From Penicillus capitatus (Eukaryota; Plantae; Chlorophyta), in NCBI GenBank assembly GCA_965649825.1, contig OZ287717.1, positions 137,201 to 201,200 on the forward strand: a stretch of 64,000 bases of DNA, read 5' to 3'. Below are positions 28,002-50,222 of this stretch, in pieces. Numbering within the stretch: the stretch's first letter is position 1; every line of letters begins with the position of its first letter. The position numbers and the translations under genes were made by a program. The notes below the pieces were generated by a model. That model made no database searches, was not told where the DNA came from, and saw only the letters and a list, made by a program, of their open reading frames with translations.

Positions 28002-31000
28002 TCAAAACGCGCTTCCTTGTCCGTCATAGTCCGTGTGACAGAAACATTTTGCTGAACTTGGGTAGCCTGGATCATCTGGCGCCTCGAGTTCCTACACACA
28101 GTTGACATCCACTACAGAAACGACTAGAAAAACTGGTAGCTCTCACCGTGTGGAGCATCTTTTCAGTTAGTTCATCTATCGCATTCTGGAGGACGGAGAT
28201 TTCGGTTCTGAACGTCTCCTTCTCGGATGCTTCAAAAGAGCTAATTTCGCTCTCTAGTTGCTTGCGCATGATCTGTTCTTTTTTGTACTCGGAATCCAGG
28301 TAGTCGATTCTCTTTGCCTGGCCTTCGATCACGACGGCGTGACTGCTCTCGCGACGTTGAATGTCAGCTCTCAGGTCCAGGAGTTCTTGCACTTCGAGTT
28401 GATCCTCGTGTACCTGTTCCATTTCGGCCAAGTCTGCGTTGTACATCGCGGTGATGTTGGCCACACGCTCGACCAGATCGTTCAGCTCCGCCTCCTGACG
28501 TTGCTCCAGAGTATGGACGTTCTCTTTGACGTCGGCGAGCTCGTGTTTGAGTTGCTGGACCTCTTCGGACCGCGTTTCCTCTAGATGTGACAAATTGCTG
28601 GTGAGTTGCTGGTAACTGGCGACGGTGTCGGCCAACTGACGCTCCAGTTCGGCGCATCGCTGTTCGCTGGCAGCAATGGCCTCTTGTTTTGCCTTGAGTT
28701 CCTCCTCCAGGCTCTGGGCTTTGGCCGAGTCCACTGCCTCCGTCAGTTTGTTGATCTCTGTCATCTTGGCGATCTCTTCTTCCACGAGGGCGCCTCTCAG
28801 ATCCGAGAGCGAACGGCTGAGGGCTGTCATATCTCGACGCATCTGTAGCAGGTTGCTCTGCAGCGTGTTCTTCTCGGAGTCCACCGCGCGACGCTTCTGT
28901 CGGGTTTCGTCGAGTTCGTTCAGAATGGAATCGAGCTCGGCTTCGGACGCTTGCTGTATCTGTTGGAGTTTCGAGATGTGCGTCTGGTGCTCCTGCAGTC
29001 TTTGATGCATCTGTCGAATGTGGTGCTCGTATTTCTCGCCGAAATTGGCGTCCGGCAAACCATAACAAATCGAAAAACGCTGCGTCTCCGACATCTTCCC
29101 AGTCTAGCACACCACAGGCAACACAAACGTCACATCATTGCTGTATGTAAAGGAGGTGAGTGAGTACCTTGGCGAATCGCTTCATCATCAGATCGCTGAT
29201 GTGCGTCTGGAGGGACATGCAGATCTCTTCGCCCTGGTTCGTCTCGAACTGAAACACGTGCAGAACTCCGGCGACCTTCATCTTGATGAAGATGGCGTTG
29301 TTGCTGGATCCAAACTGCATGATGTCGCGCAGCTCTGCCGAGTGAAGGTACTCCTTGGGGACCGGTCGGAAGAAATGCACGCCGCGTTTGTTGATGCCCA
29401 GGATCACTTTGGATGGCAACAGACCGATCGGATCGGCGTTCCGTCGCACGGGAAAGAACGTCGAGTTTCCTAAAGGGCAGACAGGCATCAGATGGCGGCG
29501 TCGCGATGCAGAGAAACGGCACGCACCGTAGGGAAGACTGTGGATGATTCTCAGGAACTGCAGTTTTCCTCCCTCCTTCGTCAGCTTGCTGAAGGCGTTG
29601 TATCTGTGGTAGACGTCCTGGTGCCATTGCTGACGCTTGCGCGACATCAGAATCTACACGGCCATGTCATTCATCTCTCTGGTCCACGTGGACTGGGAGG
29701 CACCTGAGAGGTCGTGAATTTCTCGGCGGCTTTCATGAAACGCGGATCCGTCTTCTTCAAATCGGCGCCCTCGGCGACGATGATCTGCAGGGCGCACATC
29801 TGCGCCGCGTCGTCCCGGACCACTGGATAGTTTCCTTTCAGAAAGTCATGCTGCGCTTGCATATAGGACAGCGACAGAAAAATCGGCTCCGTGATGTGTT
29901 CGTCTTGTTCCCTGCCGGACGGACACACATTCCCGAGGCCTTCGATCGAGAGAGGGGCCGTTTCACCTGAACATGCGTTTCTTGAATAGAAAGTAAGTTC
30001 CTTCCTTGTCCTCCTTCTGCGAAAGGATGTCGGCGATGTACAGATTCTCCTCGAGATGTTTGTGCGTGTCCACGAGCTCTCCGTTCTCCACCGCCTCGGA
30101 TGGCTTTATCTCGTAGAGCGAAACGTCGCGTAGTTGGCGAGGCTGATCGTCTCGGCGATGCTCTCGATCGCCTCCTGGACCGTCGATGTCGTGTGGTAAT
30201 CGAAGCGGCACTCGCGTCCGTCCAGAAACTGAACTCTCGTCGTCAACTTCTTGTTCAACAGCAGAGCCTCGATCTCGTCCAGACCCAGCGCCTAAGGAAG
30301 ATTCATGTCGCACGAGCGCGAGCGGGTCGGCGGCATCACCTCCTGTCTCGGTCCGGCGCGTGTTGTTCGCTTGAATGTTGCCCAGACGCGAGACACGAGC
30401 TCCTTCATGCGGGCCGAGTCGTGGGACTCCTGCATCACCTGGTGGATGTACTCGGAGATGACGGCGATGTACTCCTACGGACACGCGACAGGAGTGCAGA
30501 CCCTGAGCGGGCCTTCGGGTCTGTTCACCTTGGCCGGATCGAAGACGGACGCCGCCACGATCCAGAGTTCCCAGATGCGATCTCTGTACTCCTCGAGTGG
30601 GACACTTCGGCTCTGTTTGATCAGCTGCATGTAGAGTTCGTTCTTCAGATCCGGATGCTTGGCACACGTCTTGATGAGACGCGATGCCGTTTCGACCAGC
30701 TGTCCGGCTTCGAGCGACGCCGGACGGAAGCCCATATAGGTACAGATGTACTCATGCATCTCCAAAGCGTCTTGCGTCTGGCCAGAGTCCAACTTCAGCA
30801 AACTGGACGGCAGTGGCTTCTGCAGACACATGAAGGGTCTGGCGGCGGGTGGATGCGTATGGTGACGGACTTCGGAGAATTTGAGCAGCTCATCGAGCAG
30901 GGCACCTTCGGCGTCTGCAAAGGGTGGGTCTTCGGCGACGTCCAAAACGGAGGAACGACGGGATTCGCTCTTCTCAGTAGCGCCATTCACTTTGACATGT

Positions 31001-31260
31001 TCATCAATCTAAGCAGCGATGCCGTTGGAGAGCCTCTGACGAACGACTGCACGCAAAGGCAGGCGTACTTGAAACTTGAATTCGACGCTGTCAAGCCCAG
31101 CTAGTTTTTTGTTTGACGCGTACGTCGAAACGGATACCGCGTCCTACACACAAGCCATAGGATGAAGGTTCAGGTTGCTGACAGTCGACAAACAAATGGC
31201 TGGCACGGCATCGTCTTCGTGCATATCGAATAGCGTCGTTTGGGCAAGTCCCCGCAACAT
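28002..31260 (-). pseudogene. Motor-less KCBP derivative (MyTH4-FERM-coiled coil, unique C-terminus) with a 1-nt frameshift at ~30121
   Basis: Own ATG (31260) and 5' exons homologous to KCBP-B. Body near-identical to KCBP-A. Diverges at EQIMRK just before the motor into QLESEISSFE... TTTT (47098-47101) is TTT here, giving TAA at 30106-30108. Last exon and 3' end uncertain. Confidence 0.7.
28260..31091 (-). repeat. Inverted repeat arm A (~2.83 kb), copy of 46130-48958
   Basis: Identity runs from ACAGCGTCGAATTCAAG to CAGATCATGCGCAAGC, introns included; 13 mismatches in the first ~610 bp by hand. Confidence 0.98.
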
Positions 31261-34128
31261 GTCCGATAAATACCCACTGAAAATTACACAGCAATATACA
31301 TAGTACGAGATGAGTGCGATACCGATAAAGGCCCAACTCGCAGGTCTTTCTTATATATAGCGTGCAAACTGAGAATAGTCTCTTACTCCCGCTTAACACT
31401 TAGTACACTGTGGTAACATGAGAATGGTTCATAATTCACCATAGACTTTGTGGAGATACGGCGCAGTTCGCAGATGCAGTGCAAGAAGCGAGAAACAGAA
31501 CGTCGACTTCCTTACGTTTTCGTTCATTTCTTCAGGCTTCGTTATGGGGTACAAAGATTACGAGCGTTAAGTTTTTGAAGAATAAACCGGCTTAAATAAA
31601 AGAAGCCTAACACTTTCATCTTTTTCCAGGGATCTGAAGTTGAGTTCTGCGGAAGGTGGAAGGAAGAACGTCAACTGAAATCAGTACGACAGCTGCAATC
31701 ACACGTAAGACTTCATTTATTCGCATTTTTTGCCGTTTACTAATCATAGAAATTGTTTCCTGACCCGAAAATGCAGACAGATACTTCTACGACTTCATCC
31801 GGCAAGGAAGACGAGAACCATTTTAAGGGGATGCACTGCGAACAGGTCTGACAAACGAGCAATTCTTTGCTAAATGCACATTGGCAGGCCATCTTCGAAC
31901 GGACATCTTTAGGGGTTACAAGAGAACAGACTTAGCGACAACAGGTGCCTCCGCATTAACGGTGGCAAAGTTCTCGATGTTAACAGCTGTTATGTATAAA
32001 GTCAGATTCGACTGTTTGATAACTCAGAATACAATAGGAGCTTGTATGAATAGAAAACATCAATAGGAGAGGGAGCACACAACTGTGCGAATATATATTC
32101 CACATTCGGCGCTTTTTATGTTTTTTGTCTCCTGTTTTGCGGCAACTAGATCGTTTTGCTGTTTTGCTACTTTGTTGGAGAAATGCTGCTACTTGAATGT
32201 AGCAGGATGAGTTCAAGATGAAAATACCGGCCCATCGGCAAGACAACGAAAGCGATGAGCAACAATAGATGTAAGATCAGTTCGAACACAAGTATTGACG
32301 ATAGAGTCAAACTCCAAGAACAGACGGAGAATAAATGTTGCCGAAGCGATGATTAGTGACCAGGATGAATCTTGCAATTAGCACTCTTGCCAGAAAGATT
32401 TAATAGCTTAAGTCGGATCTTTCACATCCGTTAAGGACAAGATATCGATCAATATTTAGGTATGATGGAACTAATAGGAAGACAAGCAGCGAGTGCTAAG
32501 AGAAAAGATGCTATGCTCTGTTCGAGATGCAAGGAGATTTGACGTGCTTACTGTCGTAGGGGACAGCTGTTAGCTCCGCTGTCGTACTCCTTGGACAGCT
32601 GTTTCCTTCCGGGTCACATCAACACCTGAATACTTAAACGCGTTCCCTGTAAAAACTCTGCCTCGTTTGTAATCCATCATTGTTTGTCGCCTTACCTCGG
32701 CGCTTACAGCGGACAATGACACTTTTCAAATCAAAGCTCCAAGAAAGTATGCACGATGAAGAAGATAATTCGATCCACACGTATGCTAAGGTGTACATAT
32801 AACAATATTTTATCCTTTTCTAACTTAACGGCTATTTGCATCAAAGCCGCAGACAAAAGGAACAAGAACGGGATGAGTTGCAGGCTGTCACGCTTGTGTG
32901 TGTCACATCGTCTACTTCGTTTCTGAGGGGGTCGGCATCTCAAAGGGCGCTCGTGCAAGGTTCCCGTCTTTTCAGGGGTCTTTTTCTATGGTCTCGAGGA
33001 ACGGATGACTCACCTGTTGTGTGCAGTCATGTCACACTGATCGTATAAATATGTGGCATTGAACCTCGACCAACCTTGCTATGTGAACTGTAAAGTCTTC
33101 CGCTATGTTTTTTCGTTGAGCTCGGCGCTCCCGCGTGACCCTTACCACGGCGCAAGGGTTATGAAAGAATCGCACTATGATGGTCAAAGGTTGCAAGGAT
33201 TGAATATACACACCTAGGAAAATGAAGTTCGCTTGAGTGTTCTGTTTTCATATATCACAGCGTTAAGAACTTCATTTGTTTGTTTGTGGCGTTCCCATCA
33301 CATCGTGAGAACTTCATAAGCATCTTCATGCAAGTTCATCTGGAAATGCGACACGATTTTACAACACCATGCACAGAAAAAATGTAGCGGCGATGATGTC
33401 AATATCACACCGTCCGAAAACCCTCAGTCTTAGGGATTGATTGAAATGGCCAATTATATCGATTGCCAAACTATCGATGATCCACTATCACATCTCGAGA
33501 GGTGCCAAATCGTTTCAAAGTATCCTCGACACAAGCATTCAAAACCTGGCAACATCTAGAATCATACCATGCTACCTCTCCCTATCCATCGCATGCCTTC
33601 TGTACTGAGAGTGCCGAAGCAAGACGTTCTCTCTCATGCACGTCTATCTAAGAGGTCCGTGTCGATCGATCCGTTCTCGAACTCCTTTATATCTTGGATG
33701 CCAAACATTGCTTAACACAGACAAGACATCTAAGTCGACAACTTCTTAGAACACTCCTACGAAATTGGCAATCTCATCGCTTGTTTCATATCGGAATGCT
33801 CCTACCCATCTGAAATGAAACCATTGGCGAATGAGATGTTCTTTCTTTTACAAGCATCAGCTGTCAAGATGTTTGCCTCTTAACGACGTTTTGACGATCA
33901 AATACTGACCCATTCCGACTGTACGTAAGAAGTATTGTTGGCGACTTGTTGAGAAAACGCAGAATAGAGAAAACAAACTGTTTTAGAACAGGCGTTCTAT
34001 ATAGCGGAGAATGTCCATTAATGAAACGACGGTTCCGAGGTTCTGTCCGCCGCCAATCCAGATGGTCTGTCGGATTCGATGTATTTCTTCACCAGCGTCA
34101 GCGGACTTTTCTTGTTGTATCTGCCTCC

Positions 34129-35261
34129 ATGTGCACCGCTATCTTCTCTTACGGCGTCCACTCTTCTTTGCTCTTCTTCCTCGCCTTTAATCGCGACGAG
34201 TACTTTAACAGGTGCCAAAACTTCCCGCGTGCCTTAATGGCGACTGTCTTGCTCAGAACGGTTAACGTAGGGCGTCTGCGAAAGCGCATGAATGGAAAGA
34301 CCATCCAGGAGTTATCGCTCCGAGGGACCTCAAAAGAAAAGGCACATGGCTCGGAATTTCCAAGAGCGGCAGAGTCGCCTTTCTGACGAACCTATTCAAG
34401 GCGAAGAGTAAACGCCGCGCGCCGCCGCTTCGAACTCTCTCCCGTCTCCTGACCCTGCGTTCACAAAAGAGACCGCCACGTTCGCGAGGGACTCTGCCGG
34501 TCGATTTCTTAACCGGGTCGCAAAAACCGTCTGAGTTCTTGAGTGTATGAATACCCTTCTCTCTGAGATTCCAAACGTCATGTCTCTCCTTAGGACGTGG
34601 AACTGGAAAACTATCCGTCCCTGAATCTTGTGTGCGGGCAACTGTTTGAAGAGCCCGAGATATCAACAACGAGTTCTCAGGGATGCCAAGGGTCATCCTC
34701 TCTCGAAGCAGGCATCTATGGTACGCTCTCATTCACTGTCCCCATACCTCACAAGACAGTGTTCAGGACTGAGCAACGGTCCCATGGGCCAACCGAACTG
34801 GCACAAAGTGGAACACGGCAAGTCGGAACTGAAAAGTATCCTGGAAAGCGTCGGAAGAGGTAAGGCACACATCCCACTGTTCGGCACGTCGGTCAATGAC
34901 GTGTCCGGTATAGAGAAGGAGCTTCCATGGGATGAGATTTTTGATCGAGTCATGGGCAGAACAGAAGCAGTCCCTTTAGGGGGACCTTTGCCGGGGACAG
35001 GTATTGGCGGCTGGATGGAACGCCGTCTCAGTGCTATGCGTGTTCTTCCATTCTGGAATTTCGATCGAAACGTACAGCTCTGTCTCTCAAGCGTTTCCCC
35101 ATCGGAACGTGCGTTTCTCTGTCTTGAAGGGAGGTCTATGTGGTACGGTCTCACAGACACTGGTCGCCGTGTGGAAAGATCGTTCGGTGGAGATCAGAGA
35201 ACGTATCTGGGACGCAGATGAACATTTCCAGCAGCATCGCTACGCGTTCTGCTGCGACTGA
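34129..35261 (+). CDS. TANGO2: TANGO2/NRDE-family Ntn-hydrolase-like protein, copy 1
   Basis: MCTAIF..LAFNRDEYFNR, RDLKRKGTWLGISKSGRVAFLTN, SRGTLPVDFL, LSNG..WHKV, GTVSQTLV; 5-6 introns; frame intact. Confidence 0.9.
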
Positions 35262-35642
35262 TTTGCCTTCGGGCTTTTATAAAGGCTTTTATGATCCATC
35301 CCTCATTATCATCCATCCTTTTCTATTGCCTTGAGATGTCGACACACAAACGACGAACCTTTATTTCGTCAGGAGTTCGACCTCTCTGGCGACGCTCCAC
35401 GATTTAATACTCAAACTGCAAGTTGCAATAGATCAAACAAACAGGTCTACCGATAAGAGCACACTTTTTGGCTAGTGGGTTTCTCCTTCTAGACCAGAAG
35501 TCCTCTGAGGGACGCTGTTTGACTCGTATAAGGTAGACGAAAACGTGCGAAGCACAGTTATCCACAGTTTAGTGATTCTAGTCGTGCACTCCCCATCTAG
35601 ACGTGCACTTATCTTTTATTTCCAACGGGATTCTCAGTGAGC

Positions 35643-35726
35643 AGGAAGGGCATGGTTGCTCGATCATGGGACAAAAGAGTGACTAAGAAAGGCACGGTTG
35701 CTCAATCATGGGACAAAAGAGTGACC
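35643..35726. repeat. 42-bp tandem duplication upstream of TANGO2 copy 2
   Basis: 35643-35684 and 35685-35726 differ at 5 positions, all transitions; each unit contains AAGAGTGA. Confidence 0.9.
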
Positions 35727-35830
35727 AGCATATGTATGCGTTAGTATCTACTATTAAGAAGCGATAAAGGTTTTTTAATAAGCTGCGATTTCAAGTCGAA
35801 CGCGACGGACTCGATGATGTCATTTACGTC

Positions 35831-36992
35831 ATGTGTACCGCCATTTTCGCCCTTGGCACGCATACGTCGCTGCTCTTCCTCTTGGCCTTCAACCGGGACG
35901 AATTCTTTGACAGGTGACGCACCCGCTGCGACGGACAGGCGACGCTACGAGGGTCTGTGTCAGGAACGCGGCCGGCGTGCACAGATGGACGGACAGACCT
36001 GGCATCGTGGCACCGAGAGATCTCGAACGTCAAGGAACGTGGCTGGGTCTCTCCGAAAGGGGCAGAGTCTCCTTCCTCACGAACATACGCGTGGTAGATC
36101 GCCATCGATCCCTGTCCCTTTCACCGACGGCGACGAAACCTGTGTGGTGCGCAGCCCCAACCGAAGAGATCTCCTCTCTCCAGAGGCATGCTCCCAGTGG
36201 AGTTTCTCGAAGGACAGCAGACACCGTTAGAGTTCCTGACGGTAAGGCTGTGGCTTTCTGCCGACGGAGAGGTGCATCTATTGGCTGTGTCAATGGCAGG
36301 GGCTCGATGTTCACGACTACTCACCTCTCAACCTGATGTGTGCTGATCTTTCGGATCCGATGCAGCTCGGCATGTTCAGCTCGAAAGAAGAGGGAAAACC
36401 CTTCATCTTCGAGAAAGGCATCCACGGTCTCTTCGTCGACTGTGGGACCTGGCGCGGATCCGACGGTTGCGATGATGTCAGGTATCAGCAACGGCCGGCG
36501 AAATGACGCACGATGGTATAAGGTGGAACAAGGCAAGACACGACTGAAAGAGATCCTTGATCGCTTAGAGAAAGGTCCAGCCACATCTCTCCCTTTGCCG
36601 CCGCCATGTCGAAGGGCGGCGTGTCGTAGATGATGCGATTCCGTGGGATGACGTCTTTGAGCGCGTTCTGGGCAACAGCGATGAGGTGGACGTCGGGATG
36701 CCGTTGCCAGAGACGGGCGTCGAGGAATGGAGAGAGCGCAAGTTCAGTGCCATGCGCATCCTTCCTTTCTGGAACTTCGCTCCACCCGTACCCCTCTGCA
36801 TCACCCTCTCCCTGCGGCCCTTCGTCGACGGGCTCTGTGAAGGGCGGATTGTATGGGACCGTTTCGCAGACGGTGGTGGCTGTATGGAGTCATGGCTTGG
36901 TGGAAGTCAAGGAACGTCTGTGGGATGCCGATCAGAGATGCAGCCACGGAGAAATCGCCTTTCACTTGTCGAAACCCGTCACTGTCGTGTAA
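35831..36992 (+). CDS. TANGO2: TANGO2/NRDE-family protein, copy 2
   Basis: MCTAIF..LAFNRDEFFDR, GTWLGLSERGRVSFLTN, SRGMLPVEFL, ISNG..WYKV, YGTVSQTVV; 6 introns at the same positions as copy 1. Confidence 0.9.
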
Positions 36993-37354
36993 ACGGCATC
37001 TGCCTGGAAGGGATTCCTCTTTCTGTAAGACAACTGATTGGCCATCGTGGTCTCTTCGCATCGGCGAGCAACCGTTCGATGGGTCGCCGGTCACCCAACG
37101 ACAACTAGGCGCTTTTCTGCAAGCCAAACGCCGCGTGCGCGCTGCGCTTCGCCCCGTAGGACGTACAAAGACAAGCATAACAGAGCTGGTATCTGAATGC
37201 TTTGTACAGGAGTATTTGCGCTGTTAACCGTCGGTCTCTGAGAGAAACCACAGGGACGATGCCCTCGGGAAGAAAAGCCAGAAGCTTTGCGTCGACGGTC
37301 GCCGAACGGCATCCCCTTCGCCTGGACACACTTGGCGAATCTTGCAAGACGTTC

Positions 37355-38350
37355 TTATCCTCTTCGCAGGCGCTTCGATTCAACATCGTCGCTGTCATCC
37401 GCGTCAGCCAGCGGTATTTCTGACGACTCCGCCTCGGTGCGTCGACCGAGGCACGAGGCATTCGATCGATCACACGCCCCCGTGACGTTCCTCACCCATA
37501 CGACGGTTTGGCAAGGTTCTGCATATCGAGGTCGTCTGGCCATGACGTATCCATCCTGCCTGTACCGACAAAAAAGATCCAAACACAATACGTCATCCGT
37601 TGTGGCGTACGGTTCTCGCATGCCGTCCACCGAGTGAAGATAATCCTTCAAAGCCGGAAGGAATGGAGAGGCCGGATACAACAGAGAAAAGCGAGCGACA
37701 ACGCGTGTCGACGGATAGCGTTCGGTTCGGCGACGGGTGAACTGCCTCACCAGATACGGTGCACGTGGGAAACGCACCAAGGATGCATGGATTCCCGAGA
37801 CCTTGGCCACAGAAGGGATGTCCCTAGACAGCGCGCCGACAGCAATGCGGCCGTCGTGCCTCGTTGGACGTCTCGCAACGTGGCGTAGGTACAGGTCACT
37901 GCTAGACGTCATGGAGGTATCTGACAGACATAACGTGAAGTACGTCCTCGTCTGACGGTTCCTCTCCACTACAGGTACCTTCCTCCGTTGTGTCGATCGA
38001 ACCGCTCACGGTCGGTTTGCTGAGAGCAGATCGGAGAGATGATCTGCATAACCAATGCCATTTTGGGCCGAATACCTCGATCCCATGTGTCTCACCACTT
38101 GGCCGTTGCCTCGGATCTGAGAGATCTGCGAGCACGGTTCCCCCAATGCAGCAAGATCGTCCCATGCCTGACCCATGCCAAACGCAGGGGCTGTGCTCAT
38201 AGCGTCCATACGTCGACAGGACAGGTACGTATGGAGATGCGCCTGGTCAGATGGCTGGTTGATTGCGTTATCGATGTCAATAGACATGCATCGATCGACT
38301 GAGGGCAGGATGATCTTTCTTGTCAAACCGTCTGACTGTCCTTCCACATC
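37355..38350 (-). CDS. Probable spliced gene of unknown function (5' end unresolved, possibly to ~38700)
   Basis: ORFs 38006-38347 and 37355-37969 are separated by a GTGAGC..TCAG intron-like segment; no recognisable domain. Confidence 0.35.
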
Positions 38351-38936
38351 GAACGAGGCCTGTCATCTTCGACTGCCCCATGGTTCAGCGATCGCCCGGC
38401 GGTTTCGACTGCAGATGGTGCGGAGAGGCCAGCCGGTGCTGTCCGCTTGAGTGCGAGCACCACGCTGTACTGCTGGGCAGCAAGTGGCGTGGGTCGCTGA
38501 TGCGGTTGGATCGGTTGGATAGCGACACGGGTGCGCTGTTATTGGTCCGGTCCCGACTCGACGGATGGAGACTTGTAGTGATGCCGTGGACGTTGTTCTT
38601 ATCTTGTTCATTCCGCCTACCAGAAGCCGTTTACGTATCACCATCTTGCCCAAACCTAGCACCACCCTCTCCGCGACTAGCACGTTTCCAGTAGCCCTGC
38701 TTACGTGTGTTTACGACTAGTACTCCTCTCCGAAAGGGACGACACCGTAAGCAACTCCTGCTAGCAGGTGTATCCATCCATTTGAAAAAGAAGAAGAACC
38801 GTTGTCGGTAAGCACTATACTTCAGCGAGCGTCGCGCGTTGTTTCTATCGAATTCTCCGTTTCGCCGCGTCCTTTCTGTGGTCGACGGCTTTCTCCATCT
38901 CTCTCTATGTCTAGGTTAACGAAGTCGACGATCAAC

Positions 38937-40910
38937 ATGTCGCGTAAGAACGAAAAAAACGAACCTTTGCCCATTACTGACGGAACCGATAGCCGGTGTT
39001 CCGTCGGGCCCGATGTGTCCTTACGAATTCTAGTGCCGGCCTCGCGCGCTGGAAGCATCATTGGCAAGGTAGCCGCCGCGGGTCACTCCGTCGAAGTCAC
39101 GCACGAAGTTTGTGCTGCAGGGTGGTGAATACATACAATCCCTTCGCCAAGATTCCGGCGCCAAAATCAAAATCGCCAATACGATGCCCGGCTGTGAAGA
39201 AAGAGCCGTCCACATCTCTTCACCCGATAGGTAGGAAAATTGACCCCTGACCCACTGCCACTCAACAACCCTATCTCTCATGGAATGCAGTGAAGAGAAC
39301 ATGGTACCGGCGCAGCACGCCTTAGTCCGTATGCTTCATCGGATTTTCGCTGATGAGATCGATAATGAAGGCGGAGCGACAAAGGTCTCTGTCCGAATGT
39401 TAGTCGACAACTCTCAAGTGGGGCCCATCCTCGGAAAAGGAGGAGCCACGATCAATTCCATGCGCGAGAAATCCGGAGCAGTCATCAAGGTCATACAAGG
39501 CGCATCCGATCTCCCTGTCTTCCGAGGCCTCACAGATGAGCTCGTGCAAGTAAGCCAGCCGCCATCGACAAGGAGACAGACAGATGCTGGATCGATGTGT
39601 GTGTGTGCAGATTACTGGCGAATTCGACAAAGTGATCGTTGCTGTCAACCTTGTGTCTGCATGTCTTCGAGAGAATCCTCCACGTGTTCGTCCTGGGATG
39701 TCCTCTCCCGGGTCCTTTCCTCGTCCAATGGGTAGCATGGCCATGCTCTTCCCAGTCCCTCCCGGTCTAACAAGCGTTATCCAATCAACTTCTGGCTTCC
39801 TATTTGGCTTCAACGGCCTAGTCGAGGCGCAGTACAGAATGCTTGTTCCCGACAACAAGGTCGGCTGCGTCATCGGCAAGGGGGGAGACGTGATTCGCCA
39901 GATTAGAGAAGAAACCAAAGCTCGCGTTATAGTGTTCAATCCAACAGAAGGCTGTGAGGAACGCGTCGTGATGTGCCGATCCATGGATGAAGCACCGACA
40001 CTCATCTGCTCTGCTCAAGAGGCTCTCTGCAGATGTCTGTATTCACTGATCATGGAGGAAGATCGCAGCTCAGGAGGACAGCACACAGTTCAATTGCTCG
40101 TGCAACAAGATCAGGTAGGTGCAGTGCTAGGCAAAAGAGGATCCGTTATCAAGTACGGTCAACGACAGCTTCTCTGTGGATAGCTGATGGTGGTGGTGGG
40201 TGTGATGGCAGAGAGATACAGATGCATACCGGAGCAAAATTGATTGTACAAAATGAGGATCTACCTAGTTGTGCTAACGATGAAGACGAAATCCTAGAAA
40301 TCAAAGGGCGTGCTCAATCCGTCATGCAGGCCGTTCAAACCTGTTGTTGTTTAATGCGTGTCAACATGGCTAGATCCCAAGCTAAAGAAGCATCTGCTGC
40401 TATGGGCGGTGCCACAACTCAAGAGAACTTGGGCGGTGGTCATCGCGGCATGGAAATGCTGCATCATATGAACTCGCTCATGGGCATTGGAGGCATGGGT
40501 GTGATGCAACGACCCGGAATGCCAATGGGTTATGGATCTCCAATGATGGCACACAACTTCTTGCCTCCTAGAGGGAACATGGTCATGATGAATGGCGGTT
40601 CCAACAACTCTACACAGGCTGTGATGAAACTTGGTCTCACATCTGCGCAAGTGGGTGCGGTGATCGGATCCGGAGGTCAGAACATCAACCAAATTCGACA
40701 GGTATCCCTCGAGGCCTTTCGGTATGTATGGCAGCGTTGGTGCAGATCTCCTGTGCTCGGGTGAAATTACATGGCAAGGAAGACAACTGTGCTGAAAGGG
40801 AACTGGAGATAACGGGTTCGACAGAGCAATGTCAAGCAGCCCAAAATCTTGTTCAAGCGTTCCTGCTGGCTGGGGGAGCGCCGCCACAAGTCAAGATCAT
40901 CTCCGCCTGA
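38937..40910 (+). CDS. Five-KH-domain RNA-binding protein (HEN4/RCF3/PCBP-like)
   Basis: GxxG loops GSIIGKGG, GPILGKGG, GCVIGKGG, GAVLGKRG, GAVIGSGG; 5 GT-AG introns. Confidence 0.9.
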
Positions 40911-42629
40911 TTGTGTCGTTTAAACCAACCCCATTCATCCGTCGTCCTGTTCCGTTCATATCCACGACTGACTGACGCTGTCTGTCTCCAACCCATTCAT
41001 TCCGCGTATCACATCCCCTCTCTTTTCTTCTTACCTCATAAAGACTAAATAATTCCGGCATGCTTAATCCAACGATGGATTTTCCTTACTGTTCCATTCG
41101 CAAATGGCTGTTAGGAAGGTCAGTGATCTTCAGTCAGTTTTTACTTCTTGTGGGGATTGAGGAACGCAAGTGAGAACGATATACAGTTTTGGGTGAATGA
41201 GCTCGTCCTATTCATCGCTAACTAGGAACGGGGTGTCGGTGTGATCGTTTAACTGTCCATTGCTGATCGAAATCATACGAGCGCTCATTCTTTGAAATAA
41301 TAAGACGTCTGCACTCTGAGCATGGACCAGGATTTCATTTTGTCTGGATTTCAACTTGTTTCTCGTAGATGTGCTTGCTTGCTTACGTGCTGCTCTTGCT
41401 CTACAGATGCTGTTATGTTTCTATTGTCATGTCATGTCCAGTCAGAACCCAGCATCCCCAATGAGAAGAAGAACACGAAGCTTCCAAGAACTGAGCTTAA
41501 CTAGAGAAGCATGCATATACGTTTGTGTTTTCTTCAAGAAGTTCTCTCTCTCGTTCGACGACGATAACAACAACAACAACAATAAGGCCATGCACGTCAT
41601 CCTCGCTCTGAATCTTGGTAAAGGCTGCAGCAGTTTTCAATAAAAATGTGATAGATTGCAGGATCGTCCTGTTCGATTCAATGTCACATGATGTATCATC
41701 AGCACCATGCTACTACGACGTCGAAGACAACGACCGCTCTTAGCAGCCAGTGTTGCCGTGTATGTCAGTCACTGTATGTACTGTTACTGTACCTGCGACC
41801 TGCTAGGACCTACCTACCTACCTCTATCTACTGAATTCCTGCCATGGCGTTTCTCACTGATATATTTCTTGTACTGTCCTGTCGTCGTTGATGATGATGT
41901 TTGCCATTTCCAAAACTGTTGAAGAGATTAGAAGACAATCAACGCATTGAGACCAAAAGTGTGCAACAACAACATCAATCGTAGATGATCTTATTTTCTT
42001 GGCTGATCGACTCACGGATCATTACGTGCGCTACTCCTTTACTGATGGCGACAGCGAGAGAGCGATCATTATGCACGACACTTACTGCCGACAATAGACG
42101 AGGGTTGTTTGTTTCATCGATCGATCGACCGATCTGTTTGCTTGCTTGTTTGTTCGTTCGTTTATGTATCAGAACCGGTGTTCTTCTGTGGGTTATCGTT
42201 ATTATCTCTTTAATTGATTTGGAGCACGAACTCTCGGCCTACTAAGAAAAGCTGTATACCAACAACCTCAAAGTCAATCAACAGATTGCCCAGTTAGAGG
42301 GCTGGAGGTGGCGTTGCATCATACCAAGCTCATATATCACGGAATGACTTGTACTTGGGGACAGCCATGCGCAAGGGACACCGTTCTGCTGGATAGAAAC
42401 GATTGCAGAGGGATGGAGCATGATGATAGACACATTAACTGCACAAACTGTCGCGCTCACTGAAGAGGGTCGCTGACAGCAATAAAGCTTACAACAAAGA
42501 CAGCATATGCAGTTTGCTTTTTTTGTATCTCACGTTCAATGACGCGGTAGAGTCTGATTCCGAGGGCAACCGCTTGTCTGCCTGGAAACAGAGTTCAAAG
42601 ACATAAGTGTGTTGAACAGGAATTCTGCT

Positions 42630-43129
42630 TTAATGTCGATGGGTTGCAGAAGGACCATCCTCCGTCGCATCTTTCAACGTCCTCAGCAGATTCGACACCT
42701 CGCGTCCCATCGCCAACGCACGATCCGATACATTCTCTGAACCCCCTGCCAACAGACCGCTCTCTAACTGCACCTACATATGACGGCCGCCGCCATCTGC
42801 GCCATCGCTGCGGGGGAAGACACACGCTGAGGAGCTTCTGTGTTAGATCTGGCGACAGCTGCAGGAGACGTCGCATCACATCCGCGCGCAGACGTGTGAC
42901 GCGCTGCAACGTTGATAGGAGGGATCGCTGTCGCGATGGGTCATCGTCGAGATGCGTCGTGAGGAAAGACGTCACTTCGTCCAGTCCATGCGTCGTCTCC
43001 GGCGACCATCCCGCCTGCGCGACAAACCGCCGACGTCGGACGCGTTGCATTCCAGCGTCTCCCGCCTACCAATTCGTACAGCAGCGCCTCCGCGTCTTCT
43101 TCCTGCGGCGGCGCGGCGCTCGCGTCCAT
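42630..43129 (-). CDS. Small helical protein of unknown function (2 introns); may instead be the 3' exons of the gene at 43174-44210
   Basis: MDASAAPPQEEDAEALLYEL/AGWSPE..LLSTLQRVTRLRADVMRRLL..KLLS/VQLESG..REVSNLLRTLKD* using two in-frame GT-AG introns. Confidence 0.45.
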
Positions 43130-43173
43130 CTCGTGCAAAATGCTTGATGTGACAGGCAGGTCCAGTCGATCAG

Positions 43174-44210
43174 TCAGTCGACAAGGGAATCGGGATCGGC
43201 CTTTGGAAAGACGACATTGACGTCCTCGTAATCTTCCATTCGGTAAGGATTTGGCGGATCCGGTTTGATATACGAGTCCGGTTCCCACGCGTCTTTTCGC
43301 AAGACCTCCGATAGCTCCTCCAAAAACTCGTCCGATACGTGCCCCTCCACTTCCGTCGGCAGCACAATCTTCAAATAGTTCACCGCCGCTCGCAGCGTTC
43401 TGGGATGGCTGACGAGATCCATGACGTTCAGTTTCTTGCCCTGATCGTTCACCGGCAGCTTCTTGTACTCTTCCGCAATCCACGGATCGATATCCCACAC
43501 CGTCGGTTCCTTCATCGAAAAGATCTTCCAGATGTCTTTCGCTTTCGCCCCCGGGCCCAATGCCTCTTTCAGCGTCTTCTCACGGATCTCCGGATTCCGC
43601 AGGGCAATCGGCAAATCTTCATCTCGCAACGGAACGTTCTCTTCCGTCCACCTCAGCGCCTTCGCCTCCTATATCACTCTTTTATACTCATGCCTGATTT
43701 GGCAAAAGAGTGAGAGTGGGTGGTAGGTACCCTTGAGTTGTCTTCTTTGTCTGCGCGGAGAACGGAGAAATCGATTTTGTCCACCTTATTAGTAAAGGGA
43801 TTTTGGAACTCAAACACATCCGGCAGACACTCGAGATCGATGTCGCCGTCTTCGAGATCTGGCCGTTCGGGATTGAACTGTGGCGGCTCGACGTACTTCC
43901 CAAGTGTGACCATCTTCGTATCGAAGGAGACACATTTTTCCAGCTCCTTCTTCAGTTTGCTGTCGTCTCTGCGACGCGGCCGCGTTCGAATGTGACGCTT
44001 CTCGACGTCGGCACTCGCATCGACCGTCTCCTTGAACGGCGCCACGTGTTCCTTCGGCGCTTTCTTGCGATAGGCAGTCGGTCGCGGGCGGCGGCGGCGG
44101 CCGCCGCTCTCTGCGGGGTTATCTACTATCACTTCGCGAACGCCTCCGATGGGCACCGCGGCAAAGCGCCGGACTTGTCCAGCGACGTACGACAAAACGC
44201 AACGACGCAT
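43174..44210 (-). CDS. Uncharacterised protein with mitochondrial-presequence-like N-terminus
   Basis: MRRCVLSYVAGQVRRFAAV..; ORFs 43674-44255 and 43174-43629 joined by an intron at ~43669-43730. Confidence 0.55.
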
Positions 44211-44224
44211 GATTGCATAAGTCG

Positions 44225-44535
44225 ATGCAGGTCGACAGCCTTCCGTCCAAAGCAAACGAAGACATGTGTGCGTATCTCTTCGCCTCTTCGCTGCGATGCA
44301 CGTACCCGTTCGCGTTGTTATGTACGACGTCGGTGTGGGTCAGGTCTGGAACGCTATCCAGAAGACAAAGAGAAATGCCAGGAGCAGTTCGATGCCTATA
44401 AAGCCTGTCGCAAGGCGGAGGTCGGTACGGTGTTTGTCGTCGATCTGACGCACGGCGTCGGTCTCGCAGGTTCTGACGCGACGCGAGCGGCGCTTGGAGA
44501 AGGCGAAAGCGATGGAGAGTCGGCGGCGGCAATGA
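44225..44535 (+). CDS. COX23: Twin-Cx9C mitochondrial intermembrane protein, COX23/CHCHD7-like
   Basis: Spliced product C-AYLFASSLR-C-LERYPEDKEK-C-QEQFDAYKA-C; the spacing is restored by GC-AG intron 44298-44343. Confidence 0.75.
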
Positions 44536-44540
44536 GACCA

Positions 44541-45731
44541 TCACTCGGTATCTGATCCTTCCTTGCGGGTCATCTCGTTGGGCAAACTGAAAGTGGATGC
44601 TTTTATGTCCATGCGGAACCGTTTTCTGATTGGAGGCTCTTGGCCGAAGAGCCGGAGGCCATGGGATGGGGTGTGTGGCGGCGGCGGTCGCTTTTTCGTA
44701 TGCCATCGATAGAAACGCGCTGCGGTGCATTGCTGCTGCTCCCAGTCGAAACGAAAACGTCCGTCGCGGATGGCATCGGAGAGATCTTGGATGAAAGACC
44801 AACGCTCCATACCCTGACGTCTTTTCGGCCAGCGAGTGTTCTTTCGCCGTGATGTGACAGGCGCCGGGCCGCGAAACGCCCACTGCGTCTTGAGAAACTG
44901 AAGAACGGTATCGATGGGATCGTGCCTTGACCCATCGCCTCGATCCTCCACATAGAGATGCGCACGACGGGGCAGGGGGAGGATCTCGGGATGGTGATAG
45001 AATCGCCGAATGGATGACGGTACCCAGTGATCGCCACACTTCTGACTCCACATGTGTGTCCACTCCCGCCGCCATGCCTCACGAAAACGATTCCTCTCCT
45101 TGCGCCGCCGACCAGACGACATCCACACCTTCCTTCGAAAAACGCCGTAGGGGCGATGCGCTTCGCTCAGGCCATCGCCAAACGGCAGCGTTCGGAATTC
45201 GACACGAGGAGATGGCGGCTGGCGATCCGCCTCTGCCTCGGGCATGCTTGGAAGCGACGGGGAAGATGTCATGTCATCGTGGTCTTCCATCTCGGCCAGT
45301 CTCTGATCCACGTACTCAGCAAAGATCTCGATCGGCACGCCGTCGATCGTCGTCTCTTGTGGCGGCGCTGGCGGCGCCGGCAGCGATAGGCGTTCGGAAA
45401 TGGAGCTGTGCAGGATCTCGTCTGGACCAAACTCCTTCTTGCGGACTTGGACGCGAATGGAACGTCGTCGAAAGGCACCGACGTTCAGAAAAGCAGATCG
45501 CCATCTCTTGGAACTCGGATCCGGCTCGACCGCACGGCGTTTGTGCTCGTGGCCTAGGATGGACCCCAGTACACCACTGTCCTTTACAAACTCGCCACGT
45601 TCGATGCGTTCCAACTCAACCCGGACGATCCGTTCGTGCGGTCGCGGTTTCCAGGAATGGAGGCACGCCACGAGGGACGTAAGGCGCGTTGGATTGAGAC
45701 GGCAGGACAGGAGAAGGCGGTGCATGGACAC
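44541..45731 (-). CDS. Intronless 396-aa orphan ORF
   Basis: Long ORF filling the gap between COX23 and KCBP-A; Arg/Trp-rich; no motif recognised. Confidence 0.45.
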   Translation of the reverse strand: MSMHRLLLSCRLNPTRLTSLVACLHSWKPRPHERIVRVELERIERGEFVKDSGVLGSILGHEHKRRAVEPDPSSKRWRSAFLNVGAFRRRSIRVQVRKKEFGPDEILHSSISERLSLPAPPAPPQETTIDGVPIEIFAEYVDQRLAEMEDHDDMTSSPSLPSMPEAEADRQPPSPRVEFRTLPFGDGLSEAHRPYGVFRRKVWMSSGRRRKERNRFREAWRREWTHMWSQKCGDHWVPSSIRRFYHHPEILPLPRRAHLYVEDRGDGSRHDPIDTVLQFLKTQWAFRGPAPVTSRRKNTRWPKRRQGMERWSFIQDLSDAIRDGRFRFDWEQQQCTAARFYRWHTKKRPPPPHTPSHGLRLFGQEPPIRKRFRMDIKASTFSLPNEMTRKEGSDTE

Positions 45732-46007
45732 GTCAACGTCTGGATATGCGCTGCATTTTGGCAGAAGTTAACCTCCGTGGTATTATTGTCATCCACCTCT
45801 TGATATCTTTCTTCGCAACGCTATTGTTCCTTCGATACGCTGTCGACTACCGTTCGCGTGTTTCTGCCGCATTCCCGTGACTCTCTCCGAACGCAAGTGC
45901 TTGACGCGGAGACGCAGAAGGAACGGTTATCTGCCGCAGCAGTCGCAACAACAGCGATTTTATCGCACGACTTCGCTAACACGACTTCTTTCCACGACAA
46001 ACGTCCC

Positions 46008-49000
46008 ATGGATTATACACCCGTAAGTTCCGCCCACCGCCCAGGCGACTTCAGCGGCAAACCCGACGGTGACGTGTTAGGGTGAAGATGTACCGGCTGT
46101 GGGTGTCCGGGACTCTTTGCCAGCGCTGAACAGCGTCGAATTCAAGTTTCAAGTACGCCTGCCTTTGCGTGCAGTCGTTCGTCAGAGGCCCTCCAACGGC
46201 ATCGCTGCTTAGATTGATGAACATGTCAAAGTGAATGGCGCTACTGAGAAGAGCGAATCCCGTCGTTCCTCCGTTTTGGACGTCGCCGAAGACCCACCCT
46301 TTGCAGACGCCGAAGGCGCCCTGCTCGATGAGCTGCTCAAATTCTCCGAAGTCCGTCACCATACGCATCCACCCGCCGCCAGACCCTTCATGTGTCTGCA
46401 GAAGCCACTGCCGTCCAGTTTGCTGAAGTTGGACTCCAACCGGACGCAGGACGCTTTGAAGATGCACGAGTACATCTGTACCTATATGGGCTTCCGTCCA
46501 GCGTCGCTCGAAGCCGGACAGCTGGTCGAAACGGCATCGCGTCTCATCAAGACGTGTGCCAAGCATCCGGATCTGAAGAACGAACTCTACATGCAGCTGA
46601 TCAAACAGAGCCGAAGTGTCCCACTCGAGGAGTACAGAGATCGCGTCTGGGAACTCTGGATCGTGGCGGCGTCCGTCTTCGATCCGGCCAAGGTGAACAG
46701 ACCCCAAGGCCCGCTCAGGGTCTGCACTCCTGTCGCGTCTCCGTAGGAGTACATCGCCGTCATCTCCGAGTACATCCACCAGGTGATGCAGGAGTCCCAC
46801 GACTCGGCCCGCATGAAGGAGCTCGTGTCTCGCGTCTGGGCAACATTCAAGCGAACAACACGCGCCGGACCGAGACAGGAGGTGACGTCGCCGGCCCGCT
46901 CGCGCTCGTGCGACATGAATCTTCCTTAGGCGCTGGGTCTGGACGAGATCGAGGCACTGCTGTTGAACAAGAAGTTGACGACGAGAGTTCAGTTTCTGGA
47001 CGGACGCGAGTGCCGCTTCGATTACCACACGACATCGACGGTCCAGGAGGCGATCGAGAGCATCGCCGAGACGATCAGCCTCGCCAACTACGCGACGTTT
47101 TCGCTCTACGAGATAAAGCCATCCGAGGCGGTGGAGAACGGAGAGCTCGTGGACACGCACAAACATCTCGAGGAGAATCTGTACATCGCCGACATCCTTT
47201 CGCAGAAGGAGGACAAGGAAGGAACTTACTTTCTATTCAAGAAACGCATGTTCAGGTGAAACGGCCCCTATCTCGATCGAAGGCCTCGGGAATGTGTGTC
47301 CGTCCGGCAGGGAACAAGACGAACACATCACGGAGCCGATTTTTCTGTCGCTGTCCTATATGCAAGCGCAGCATGACTTTCTGAAAGGAAACTATCCAGT
47401 GGTCCGGGACGACGCGGCGCAGATGTGCGCCCTGCAGATCATCGTCGCCGAGGGCGCCGATTTGAAGAAGACGGATCCGCGTTTCATGAAAGCCGCCGAG
47501 AAATTCACGACCTCTCAGGTGCCACCCGGTCCTCGGGGACCAGAGAGATGAATGACATGGCCGTGCAGATTCTGATGTCGCGCAAGCGTCAGCAATGGCA
47601 CCAGGACGTCTACCACAGATACAACGCCTTCAGCAAGCTGACGAAGGAGGGAGGAAAACTGCAGTTCCTGAGAATCATCCACAGTCTGCCCTACGGTGCG
47701 TGCCGTTCCTCTGCATCGCGGCGCCGCCATCTGATGCCTGCCTGCCCTTTAGGAAACTCGACGTTCTTTCCCGTGCGACGGAACGCCGATCCGATCGGTC
47801 TGTTGCCATCCAAAGTGATCCTGGGCATCAACAAACGCGGCGTGCATTTCTTCCGACCGGTCCCCAAGGAGTACCTTCACTCGGCAGAGCTGCGCGACAT
47901 CATGCAGTTTGGATCCAGCAACAACGCCATCTTCATCAAGATGAAGGTCGCCGGCGTTCTGCACGTGTTCCAGTTCGAGACGAACCAGGGCGAAGAGATC
48001 TGCATGTCCCTCCAGACGCACATCAGCGATCTGATGATGAAGCGATTCGCCAAGGTACTCACCTCCTTTACATACAGCAATGATGTGACGTTTGTGTTGC
48101 CTGTGGTGTGCTAGACTCGGAAGATGTCCGAGACGCAGCGTCGTTCGGGCAGGGATGGTTTGCCGGACGCCAATTTCGGCGAGAAATACGAGCACCACAT
48201 TCGACAGATGCATCAAAGACTACAGGAGCACCAGACGCACATCTCGAAACTCCAACAGATACAGCAAGCGTCCGAAGCCGAGCTCGATTCCATTCTGAAC
48301 GAACTCGACGAAACCCGACAGAAGCGTCGCGCGGTGGATTCCGAGAAGAACACGCTGCAGAGCAACCTGCTACAGATGCGTCGAGATATGACAGCCCTCA
48401 GCCGTTCGCTCTCCGATCTGAGAGGCGCCCTCGTGGAAGAAGAGATCGCCAAGATGACAGAGATCAACAAACTGACGGAGGCAGTGGACTCGGCCAAAGC
48501 CCAGAGCCTGGAGGAGGAACTCAAGGCAAAACAAGAGGCCATTGCTGCCAGCGAACAGCGATGCGCCGAACTGGAGCGTCAGTTGGCCGACACCGTCGCC
48601 AGTTACCAGCAACTCACCAGCGATTTGTCACATCTAGAGGAAACGCGGTCCGAAGAGGTCCAGCAACTCAAACACGAGCTCGCCGACGTCAAAGAGAACG
48701 TCCATACTCTGGAGCAACGTCAGGAGGCGGAGCTGAACGATCTGGTCGAGCGTGTGGCCAACATCACCGCGATGTACAACGCAGACTTGGCCGAAATGGA
48801 ACAGGTACACGAGGATCAACTCGAAGTGCAAGAACTCCTGGACCTGAGAGCTGACATTCAACGTCGCGAGAGCAGTCACGCCGTCGTGATCGAAGGCCAG
48901 GCAAAGAGAATCGACTACCTGGATTCCGAGTACAAAAAAGAACAGATCATGCGCAAGCGCTACTTTAACCAGATTGAAGATATGAAGGGGAAGATTCGCG

Positions 49001-50222
49001 TCTACTGTCGCGTTCGTCCCATGCTGCCCTTCGAAAAGAGCAGAGGGCAGGATATATCGGTCTCTGTACCCGATGACATGACCATTACCCACCAATGGAA
49101 AGATGAGAAGAAAGATAGGGAGTACGTCTTTGATAGCGTTTTTACACCCGACATTCGACAAGACCAGGTGCGTCCCTCTACTGTGTGCCGCATCGCCCTG
49201 ACCCATGGTTCTAGGTTTTTGAGAGTACGAAGCATTTGGTTCAGTCTGCTGTGGATGGATTTAATGTCTGTATCTTTGCCTATGGCCAGACCGGCTCGGG
49301 CAAGACCTTCACCATCTATGGATCCGATTCTCAACCGGGACTGACGCCAAGAGGCATCCAAGAACTGTTCGATATCCTCGAACGCGATGCTGCGAAGTAC
49401 ACATCTTCTGTCAAGTGCTATATGCTTGAGCTGTACCAAAACACTGTGGTGGATTTATTGACGCCTTCCAAGAAGAAACCGGTAAGACGCGGGCGATCGG
49501 TATGGACGGATTGATGAGGGTCTCTTAGGTGAAGCTCGATATCAAGATCGATGCCGGGGGGATGGTGGTGGTTCATGGCGCGATCATGGAAGAGGTGACG
49601 TCTGCTCAGCAGCTCATGGACGTCATCTCGGCCGGACAGAGGCGACGACACGTGTCCGCCACGCACATGAATAGAGAGTCATCTCGATCGCACTTGATCA
49701 TGAGCTTCATTATTGAATGTACCAATCTTCAGACGCAGAACGTCACGAAGGGCAAGCTCAGTTTTGTCGATCTGGCCGGATCGGAAAGGTCAGCCGCCAG
49801 ACGGATCAAAATGATCATTCTCAGCCGGCGGCGCGTGTGATCGCAGGATTAAGAAATCGAAGGCGGAGGGCGAGCAGCTAAAGGAAGCGCAGGCGATTAA
49901 TAAATCGTTATCTGCCCTGGGCAACGTGATCGTCGCGCTGTCGCAAGGAAAGGGCCACGTTCCGTACAAGGACAACAAGTTGACGCTGCTGATGAGCGAC
50001 TCCATCGGCGGCAACGCCAAGACGCTGATGTTTGTGAACGTCTCGCCGACGGACAGCAACTTGGACGAAACTCAGAACTCGTTGCTCTACGCGACGCGTG
50101 TGAAGGCCATCAAGAACGATCCCTCCAAGCTGATGCTGGCAAGGGAACAGGCCAAGATGAAGAAACAAGTGAACCGTTGGAAGGCGGGTATGGACGTCTC
50201 CCACATCCTCGCTCAGTTGTGA
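46008..50222 (+). CDS. KCBP: Kinesin-like calmodulin-binding protein, KCBP-A (MyTH4-FERM-coiled coil-C-terminal motor)
   Basis: MyTH4 [12 protein letters not shown]; [39 protein letters not shown]; motor [30 protein letters not shown]; about 11 introns. Confidence 0.96.
46130..48958 (+). repeat. Inverted repeat arm B, copy of 28260-31091
   Basis: Same boundaries and identity as arm A; the ORF track shows duplicated peptides (e.g. 46231..46746 vs 30475..30990). Confidence 0.98.

Follow-up and report, generated by a model that had tools for sequence, protein, structure and literature searches.

Do the near-identical arms of a long inverted repeat turn a kinesin locus into a switch, or do they record the exchange of sequence between old gene copies? 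This question is raised by a stretch of 64,000 nucleotides from the green alga Penicillus capitatus (assembly GCA_965649825.1, contig OZ287717.1, positions 137,201 to 201,200 of the forward strand), which is called the window below and contains no Ns. The window holds a cluster of three paralogs of KCBP (kinesin-14VI). Gene A lies on the minus strand and is followed by about 14.8 kb of housekeeping genes, after which genes B and C stand in tandem on the plus strand. The repeat is shared by A and B. In the preliminary description of this DNA the arrangement was taken for a candidate invertible locus, in which promoters would be swapped between a motor-bearing and a motor-less gene. We instead favour, with a probability of about 0.7, the reading that the repeat is a tract of conversion or templated repair between old inverted paralogs which extends to the limits of the homology between A and B, and that it is neither a young insertion nor a designed switch.

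The inverted repeat and the differences between its arms

Repeats were sought in the window with a repeat finder and by self-blastn. The repeat finder reported three abutting inverted pairs which jointly cover 28260-31096 on the minus strand (arm A) and 46125-48958 on the plus strand (arm B). Self-blastn joined 28260-31091 and 48958-46130 in a single alignment of 2833 columns with 98.3% identity, 43 mismatches and 2 indels. Arm A reaches from the inside of exon 2 to a neck codon of the motor-less gene A, arm B is the matching part of the full-length KCBP gene B, and about 15.03 kb separate the two. Six whole introns are contained in the arms. The identity of about 98% including introns, and the orientation of the two genes away from each other, had been recognised correctly in the preliminary description. 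Both ends of the repeat sit within coding exons and are sharp, the identity falling from about 98% to background within 50 bases or less. The longest perfect tracts between the arms measure 336, 222, 213, 207 and 171 bp. Long tracts of identity in inverted arms around a segment, as expected for an inversion by non-allelic homologous recombination (NAHR), are thus present in this locus. A third, older copy was detected by self-blastn on the plus strand at about 50995-55034, where it is 74-82% identical in patches. Scans of the window for Rfam families and tRNAs gave no matches.

An open reading frame (ORF) which crosses the outer junction of arm A is present on two contigs of the ENA metagenome assembly ERZ25074695. 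One of them, ctg340358_15x_l (462 kb, ena:ERZ25074695), is collinear with the window through all four arm junctions. Over window positions 18072-49058 (loci L001 and L004) it is identical to the window between about 23.6 and 39.1 kb. The two differ at 6 sites between 20.2 and 23.6 kb, and from 39.1 to 49.1 kb the differences number about 40 (about 0.4%). Such a mosaic suggests either a third haplotype or a population that recombines. The other contig, ctg295774_15x_l (12.6 kb, locus L002), represents a second haplotype which is 98.3% identical to the window; it extends from the left flank through arm A and over 4.8 kb of the spacer, in the order seen in the window. For the B side no contig of the second haplotype is on record. 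The comparison therefore covers three haplotypes, namely the window, ctg340358 and, for the A side only, ctg295774, with both public contigs coming from one metagenome assembly.

Four arm sequences were compared: A from the window, A from L002, B from the window and B from ctg340358. In the outer half of the repeat (47688-48958) about 24 fixed differences separate A from B, and every one of them is linked to its own flank in all haplotypes. In the inner half (46130-47566) A and B are set apart by two sites only, 47270 and 47524, and almost every other difference is confined to a single sequence. Both paralogs are polymorphic at sites 46737 and 46894, which group the sequences differently. The differences are furthermore unevenly spread, with dense patches of 31, 13 and 13 bp that contain 7, 8 and 4 of them, respectively. 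Mosaic tracts together with polymorphisms shared between paralogs are the pattern expected of gene conversion, and patchy exchange of sequence between the arms is supported by this comparison of sequences. Since polymorphisms are shared and the inner half is almost devoid of fixed differences, recent interlocus gene conversion or long-tract templated repair finds support. The statement of the preliminary description that gene conversion homogenises the arms agrees with these data, given two polymorphisms shared between the paralogs and the inner half almost without fixed differences versus about 24 in the outer half.

The differences were polarised with gene B2 of the sister species described below as outgroup, which placed 31 changes on A and 14 on B. 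A Logan transcript of 72% identity had been considered as outgroup for the fixed differences; it was too distant to be reliable, and B2 proved the better choice. Two of the patches deserve mention. The patch at 30754-30784 (corresponding to 46437-46467 in B), with its 7 changes in 31 bp, occurs only in the A haplotype of the window. At 29064-29076 (48142-48154 in B) 8 changes in 13 bp, mostly to T, are fixed in A. No donor for either patch was found in B, C or the sister species.

The inverted copy in a sister species

A cluster look-up led, by way of a 129-aa ORF that corresponds to the last exon of B, to a sister species in assembly ERZ26696514, where the locus is found on ctg303815 (1.8 Mb, 116x) and ctg302457 (204 kb, 126x). 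These contigs are 99.1% alike. Compared with window positions 34107-56281 they show 83-85% identity and the same order and orientation of the TANGO2-like genes, the KH gene, a 396-codon ORF, B and C. To the left of the spacer an inverted KCBP copy on the minus strand, A2, is present in the sister species as well. Because the inverted copy occupies the same place in the same orientation in a species that is about 15% diverged, A predates the species split. With A being this old, the high identity of the arms derives from exchange of sequence; a young duplication is not its source. Within the species arm A matches arm B at 98.3%, versus 82% for A or B against B2 of the sister species; copies older than speciation are thus far more alike within the species than between species, as expected of conversion. 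The synteny ends just downstream of C (window from about 56281, locus L007 of the sister species from 16425). Beyond this point ATG8 and a TPR gene follow in the sister species, whereas the window has a protein kinase at about 57-58 kb besides other ORFs.

The 5' end of gene A does not belong to the repeat. A block at 31097-31224 on the minus strand, made up of exon 1 (MHEDDA), intron 1 of 63 nt and 47 nt at the start of exon 2, is unrelated to the 5' end of B and resembles C, whose corresponding block lies at 50966-51099. Positions 31097-31213 are 76-82% identical to 50966-51085 upstream of C, and exon 1 and the start of exon 2 of A match MAEE and DAVSVSTYASNK... of C. This C-likeness of 76-82% is found although the four-fold sites of B and C are saturated (42% identity). 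The switch from C-like to B-like sequence falls within an 8-bp CAGCGTCG which is common to A, B and C. Within intron 1 the 3' 48 nt (31144-31206 versus 50943-51038) are about 80% identical between A and C and share ATGGC..TGTGTAG; the other introns do not align. This likeness of intron 1 may reflect either a more recent exchange with C or a constrained regulatory element.

The copy of the sister species is composed the other way round. Bases 1-770 of locus L009, which contains A2, are C-like, with 93.3% identity to C2 of the same species and 88.7% to C of the window. Bases 738-1626 resemble the 5' end of B and about 400 bp of the sequence upstream of B, and are 83.6% identical to B2. In an alignment of B, B2 and A2 the ATG, the GTAAGT donor, the 58-nt intron, the acceptor and exon 2 are conserved. 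An attempt to trace the ancestry of the N-terminus from about 20 residues had yielded a weak signal (B versus P0001, p about 0.03) and is superseded by this alignment. A search with the junction ORF of A returned only B-type ORFs from the sister species and none which carries the tail of A. Gene A thus combines a C-like 5' end with a B-like body in P. capitatus, and a B-like 5' end with a C-like body in the sister species. These opposite mosaics, as far as sequence comparison can tell, are best explained by repeated ectopic exchange of A with both of its partners.

We infer the following course of events. Gene A would exchange sequence with its partners by ectopic (interlocus) recombination without crossing-over. 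Its body, from the interior of exon 2 to the neck, would recently have been overwritten from B or exchanged with B, which would have given rise to arms of 98.3% identity; the direction was presumably from B to A. Smaller exchanges would still be going on in the inner half.

Genes A, B and C and the spacer

Exons were outlined by comparing stop-free segments of C with B and joined by GT-AG introns of 47-63 nt. The introns modelled in A, B and C measure 47-63 nt, with one of 96 nt, and end in TAG or CAG acceptors. Two KCBP introns are in frame and free of stops, and plain ORF lists read through both of them.

Gene B (46008-50222, plus strand) encodes a full-length KCBP with MyTH4, FERM, coiled coil and C-terminal motor. 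Its 5' part consists of exon 1 (46008-46022, MDYTP), an intron (46023-46080) and exon 2 (46081-46152). The protein matches the Pfam families MyTH4, RA_2/FERM_N, FERM_M, FERM_C/IRS, Microtub_bd and Kinesin, and thus has the N-terminal domains as well as the kinesin-14 motor and neck that characterise KCBP (PF00225, E=1.4e-106; PF16796, E=1.6e-45). The homologs of B are KCBP or kinesin-14VI proteins of green algae and plants, and its closest named relatives are those of Caulerpa lentillifera (65%, P0003), Bryopsis (55%) and Ostreobium (52%). Judged by this one gene, the DNA probably stems from a siphonous green alga akin to the Bryopsidales. Downstream of the motor B ends with a basic and hydrophobic stretch, which we take to resemble the calmodulin-binding helix of plants. 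Between the two B alleles, of the window and ctg340358, 9 synonymous and 4 nonsynonymous polymorphisms were counted. B is clearly constrained and is a working motor gene with its own native, conserved 5' exons. Gene C (50931-55099, plus strand; exon 1 50931-50942, exon 2 51039-51113) is an old tandem paralog with the same architecture. In the best-conserved blocks C and B are 75% identical at the amino acid and 71% at the nucleotide level. With four-fold sites only 42% identical, which is near saturation, the split of B and C is old.

Gene A (28002-31224, minus strand) was modelled by homology as a MyTH4-FERM-coiled-coil paralog without a motor. Its 11 exons are 31224-31207, 31143-31069, 31008-30871, 30819-30529, 30474-30340, 30291-29967, 29911-29704, 29653-29527, 29469-29168, 29103-28147 and 28091-28002, of which exons 2-10 are common to A and B. 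The outer end of the repeat lies inside a large exon, directly after the codons for ...EQIMRK. From there A continues with QLESEISS... and B runs on into the motor. The A-specific tail (28002-28259, minus strand) comprises 62 codons when read unspliced, or 38 and 29, hence 67, codons when a well-formed candidate intron of 55 nt (28146-28092, GTGAGA...TGTGTAG) is removed; the stop is at 28004-28002. Within the window nothing similar to this tail was detected, and it showed neither likeness to a motor nor a Pfam match. The preliminary description had one gene continue into the motor domain beyond the arms, as the PF00225 match of B bears out, and the other into an unrelated coiled coil, where only the short tail of 62 or 38 and 29 codons is found. 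In the last exon of the tail the haplotypes differ at two sites, both of them synonymous third positions. A short-chain dehydrogenase gene (26791-27429, minus strand; adh_short matches in public gene calls) starts about 570 bp downstream of the A stop at 28002, so that the 3' end of A and the promoter of the dehydrogenase must share a small gap.

The window copy of A carries a 1-bp deletion in the exon for RA/FERM-N. At 30121-30124 (minus strand) the window reads TTT where arm B and haplotype L002 read TTTT; the frame is shifted, which cuts the product short after about 267 aa. L002 has the T, and its 11 corresponding exons give an open protein of 888 aa. The frameshift is probably a polymorphism or, less likely, a homopolymer error. 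The protein predicted from L002 matches the Pfam families MyTH4, RA_2, FERM_M and FERM_C, as KCBP does in this part, and showed no match to Kinesin or Microtub_bd. Lacking a motor, A is therefore not a member of the KCBP family but only a derivative of it. Its private exonic changes in L002 comprise 7 synonymous and no nonsynonymous ones. Since A is intact in one haplotype and frameshifted in that of the window, constraint on A appears relaxed; it does not look clearly lost. With a segregating frameshift A is at best dispensable in some genomes.

As a matter of speculation, a protein that has the MyTH4-FERM tail of B and a near-identical coiled coil but no motor could compete with B for cargo or pair with it. 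In its fullest form this idea makes A a working regulator and not debris. A would bind the same cargo, in Bryopsidales the chloroplasts, or pair with B through a coiled coil that conversion keeps near-identical, and would thereby damp or anchor KCBP-driven retrograde transport in a giant unicellular alga; a null allele would be segregating, and rare crossovers between the arms would swap the promoter of the motor. We regard this as rather doubtful.

The spacer between the 5' ends of A and B (31225-46007) contains two TANGO2-like ORFs at about 34.6-36.4 kb, a KH-domain gene at about 39.3-40.8 kb, a CHCH/COX23-like ORF at about 44.3 kb and a 396-codon ORF at 44541-45731 on the minus strand. Pfam searches with the ten longest spacer ORFs found only TANGO2, KH and CHCH and no recombinase or transposase domain, and the precomputed Pfam calls on the public contig agree. 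The gene content given in the preliminary description (two TANGO2 genes, the KH gene and COX23) was accurate, as was the position of both first exons inside the spacer (31224-31207 for A and 46008-46022 for B). L002 has a 243-bp insertion at window position 34042 (L002 about 1856-2095), just upstream of the first TANGO2-like ORF. Beyond the insertion L002 is 5% diverged, and ctg295774 ends at the equivalent of window position 35909.

Alternative explanations and known systems

How well do other explanations account for the repeat? The preliminary description had itself allowed for a second arm that is a haplotype or an assembly artefact. A collapsed or misjoined haplotype would fit the divergence of the arms (1.7%), which is similar to that between L002 and the window (1.7%). 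Each arm, however, has unique non-homologous flanks on both sides and no gaps occur; all four junctions recur in the independent public contig ctg340358 and the A junctions once more in ctg295774, and the other species' assembly has an inverted copy at the same site at 116-126x coverage. Since public contigs have the same structure, the repeat is no assembly artefact, and this explanation is extremely improbable. We give as little credit to a single inversion with staggered breaks, which would have duplicated a 2.8-kb segment at both ends, leaving A with the ancestral 5' end and B with the ancestral 3' end and splitting a small gene between the 5' exons of B and the tail of A. Such an event would explain why collinearity with C extends across the inner end in A and across the outer end in B, and the 5' exons of B do form an open frame with the tail of A: the hypothetical ancestral junction encodes 88 aa in frame once exon 1 of B and a tail intron are modelled. 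This candidate gene was rejected because the 5' exons of B are conserved in the sister species, and the hypothetical split protein has neither a Pfam match nor a homolog. The junction of the right spacer end with arm B, which should be novel and young under this explanation, is likewise conserved in the sister species, exons 1 and 2 of B included. Both B2 and A2 conserve the sequence upstream of B together with its first two exons, which are hence native KCBP exons far older than the arms. Thus the 5' end of B is native and old, and the model of staggered breaks is wrong. A single recent one-ended repair is a serious alternative, and one that we rate as unlikely. A break in an old A would have been repaired by copying 2.8 kb from B and joining the copy to non-homologous DNA at 28259, with deletion of the former 3' part of A, which would make the lack of a motor as young as the arms and confined to this species. 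The outer end, which is sharp, lies in an exon and has no homology beyond it, is consistent with this, as are the shared 8 bp at the inner switch point, the C-like body of the sister copy, which suggests an older A probably ill suited to conversion with B, and the result that the A junction ORF retrieved no tail-carrying ORF from the sister species. Against it, the shared polymorphisms and the lack of fixed differences point to exchange in the inner half after the event, so that conversion acts anyway, and the well-formed 55-nt intron of the tail and the purely synonymous differences in its last exon hint at an established coding 3' end.

Could the locus nevertheless flip? With identical tracts of up to 336 bp an inversion is possible in principle. 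Crossing-over between the arms could turn the spacer round and thereby exchange the promoters and the first 23-31 codons. The invertible or polymorphic locus of the preliminary description further demands that crossing-over within the 2.8-kb arms turns the 15-kb spacer at appreciable frequency, so that promoters and N-termini alternate between motor-bearing and motor-less bodies. Its geometry is sound: the arms are inverted and 98.3% identical with perfect tracts of up to 336 bp, and both first exons lie in the spacer, so that the products of a flip are in frame and either promoter and N-terminus would be joined to either 3' end. The polymorphisms common to both arms could also be explained by a flip and a flip-back with different crossover points, and in humans inversions between inverted repeats do recur, HsInv0241 swapping the first exons of AQP12A and AQP12B (PMC3961182). 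The switch-like or polymorphic behaviour itself finds no counterpart in the data. A single orientation is seen in all five contigs of the two species, that is, in the window, in ctg340358 (four junctions), in ctg295774 (both A junctions), in ctg303815 and in ctg302457 (B side), which is a small sample of assembled contigs. Contigs of 462 kb and 1.8 Mb pass through the locus unbroken at the arms, which argues against a high flip rate. All haplotypes keep the differences of the outer 1.3 kb with their respective flanks, and no site-specific recombinase or invertase gene, as a programmed switch would need, is found among the ten longest spacer ORFs. After a flip there is still one full-length, motor-bearing and one motor-less gene, and only the promoter and the first 23-31 codons change partners; moreover, the motor-less copy is frameshifted in the window itself. 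An invertible locus is thus quite improbable, and inversions are presumably rare or selected against.

Several points weigh against the reading which we prefer, namely conversion or templated repair between old inverted paralogs. A single tract of 2.83 kb is long for conversion, which is itself deduced. The likeness of A to B may have amounted to only 72-83% before the event, which would be a poor substrate for classical conversion. Beyond the outer end there is no homology, and one-ended templated repair, i.e. break-induced or synthesis-dependent copying terminated by end-joining, accounts for this end no less well and would imply a motor-less state of recent origin. The reading of A2 in L009 stops short of its 3' end, where a motor may or may not be encoded. 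Among three haplotypes, one covering the A side only and two coming from one assembly, a minor inverted arrangement could be missed. The signal of constraint on A (7 synonymous and no nonsynonymous changes in L002) was possibly imported from B alleles by conversion.

If the locus were a switch, it would be a rare eukaryotic case of a DNA inversion that rewires a transport motor. Under conversion or templated repair it is of interest as a clean example, resolved at the sequence level, of conversion between three paralogs, one inverted and two in tandem, whose mosaics are opposite in two sister species. The locus also cautions that high identity of inverted gene copies neither dates their origin nor implies flipping.

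Genes B and C follow canonical KCBP with the full layout of MyTH4, FERM, coiled coil and C-terminal motor, and the named proteins closest to them are KCBPs of Bryopsidales and other green algae. In contrast, A keeps the tail that binds cargo and cytoskeleton and the dimerising coiled coil and is devoid of neck, motor and calmodulin-binding end; by definition it is no kinesin. In Bryopsis, the two canonical KCBP-type kinesins Kin14VIa and Kin14VIb have redundant roles in the retrograde transport of chloroplasts, whose motility depends on the FERM domain (PMC12961179). In a lineage whose chloroplasts are moved by KCBP (PMC12961179), the locus offers a natural KCBP without a motor, of which intact and null alleles exist. 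With the recurrent inverted-repeat inversions of humans, of which HsInv0241 trades first exons between the inverted paralogs AQP12A and AQP12B, the locus has in common kilobase-long inverted paralogous arms of high identity around a gene-bearing spacer and a crossover that would exchange 5' ends (PMC3961182). It differs from them in that both orientations were looked for and only one was found in five contigs of two species.

Programmed invertible switches are known from the bacterial Hin, Gin and Fim invertases and from FLP of the yeast 2-micron plasmid. Only the geometry of inverted repeats around a promoter-carrying segment is similar here. The arms are gene bodies and not short dedicated sites, the spacer ORFs scanned include no recombinase gene, and mixed orientations are not seen. 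Closer to the locus are the arms of sex-chromosome palindromes and inverted segmental duplications, for which interlocus gene conversion and concerted evolution are well known. As in these systems, the paralogs are older than their identity implies, the mosaic has sharp ends, polymorphisms are shared, and the patterns of donor and acceptor differ between sister lineages. Unlike them, the locus involves three partners (one inverted and two in tandem), a truncated acceptor gene, tracts bounded inside coding exons and opposite mosaics in two species. The evidence points to ordinary paralog dynamics, and to a further case in which inverted and tandem paralogs evolve in concert and as mosaics; the motor-less derivative of KCBP adds a mild interest.

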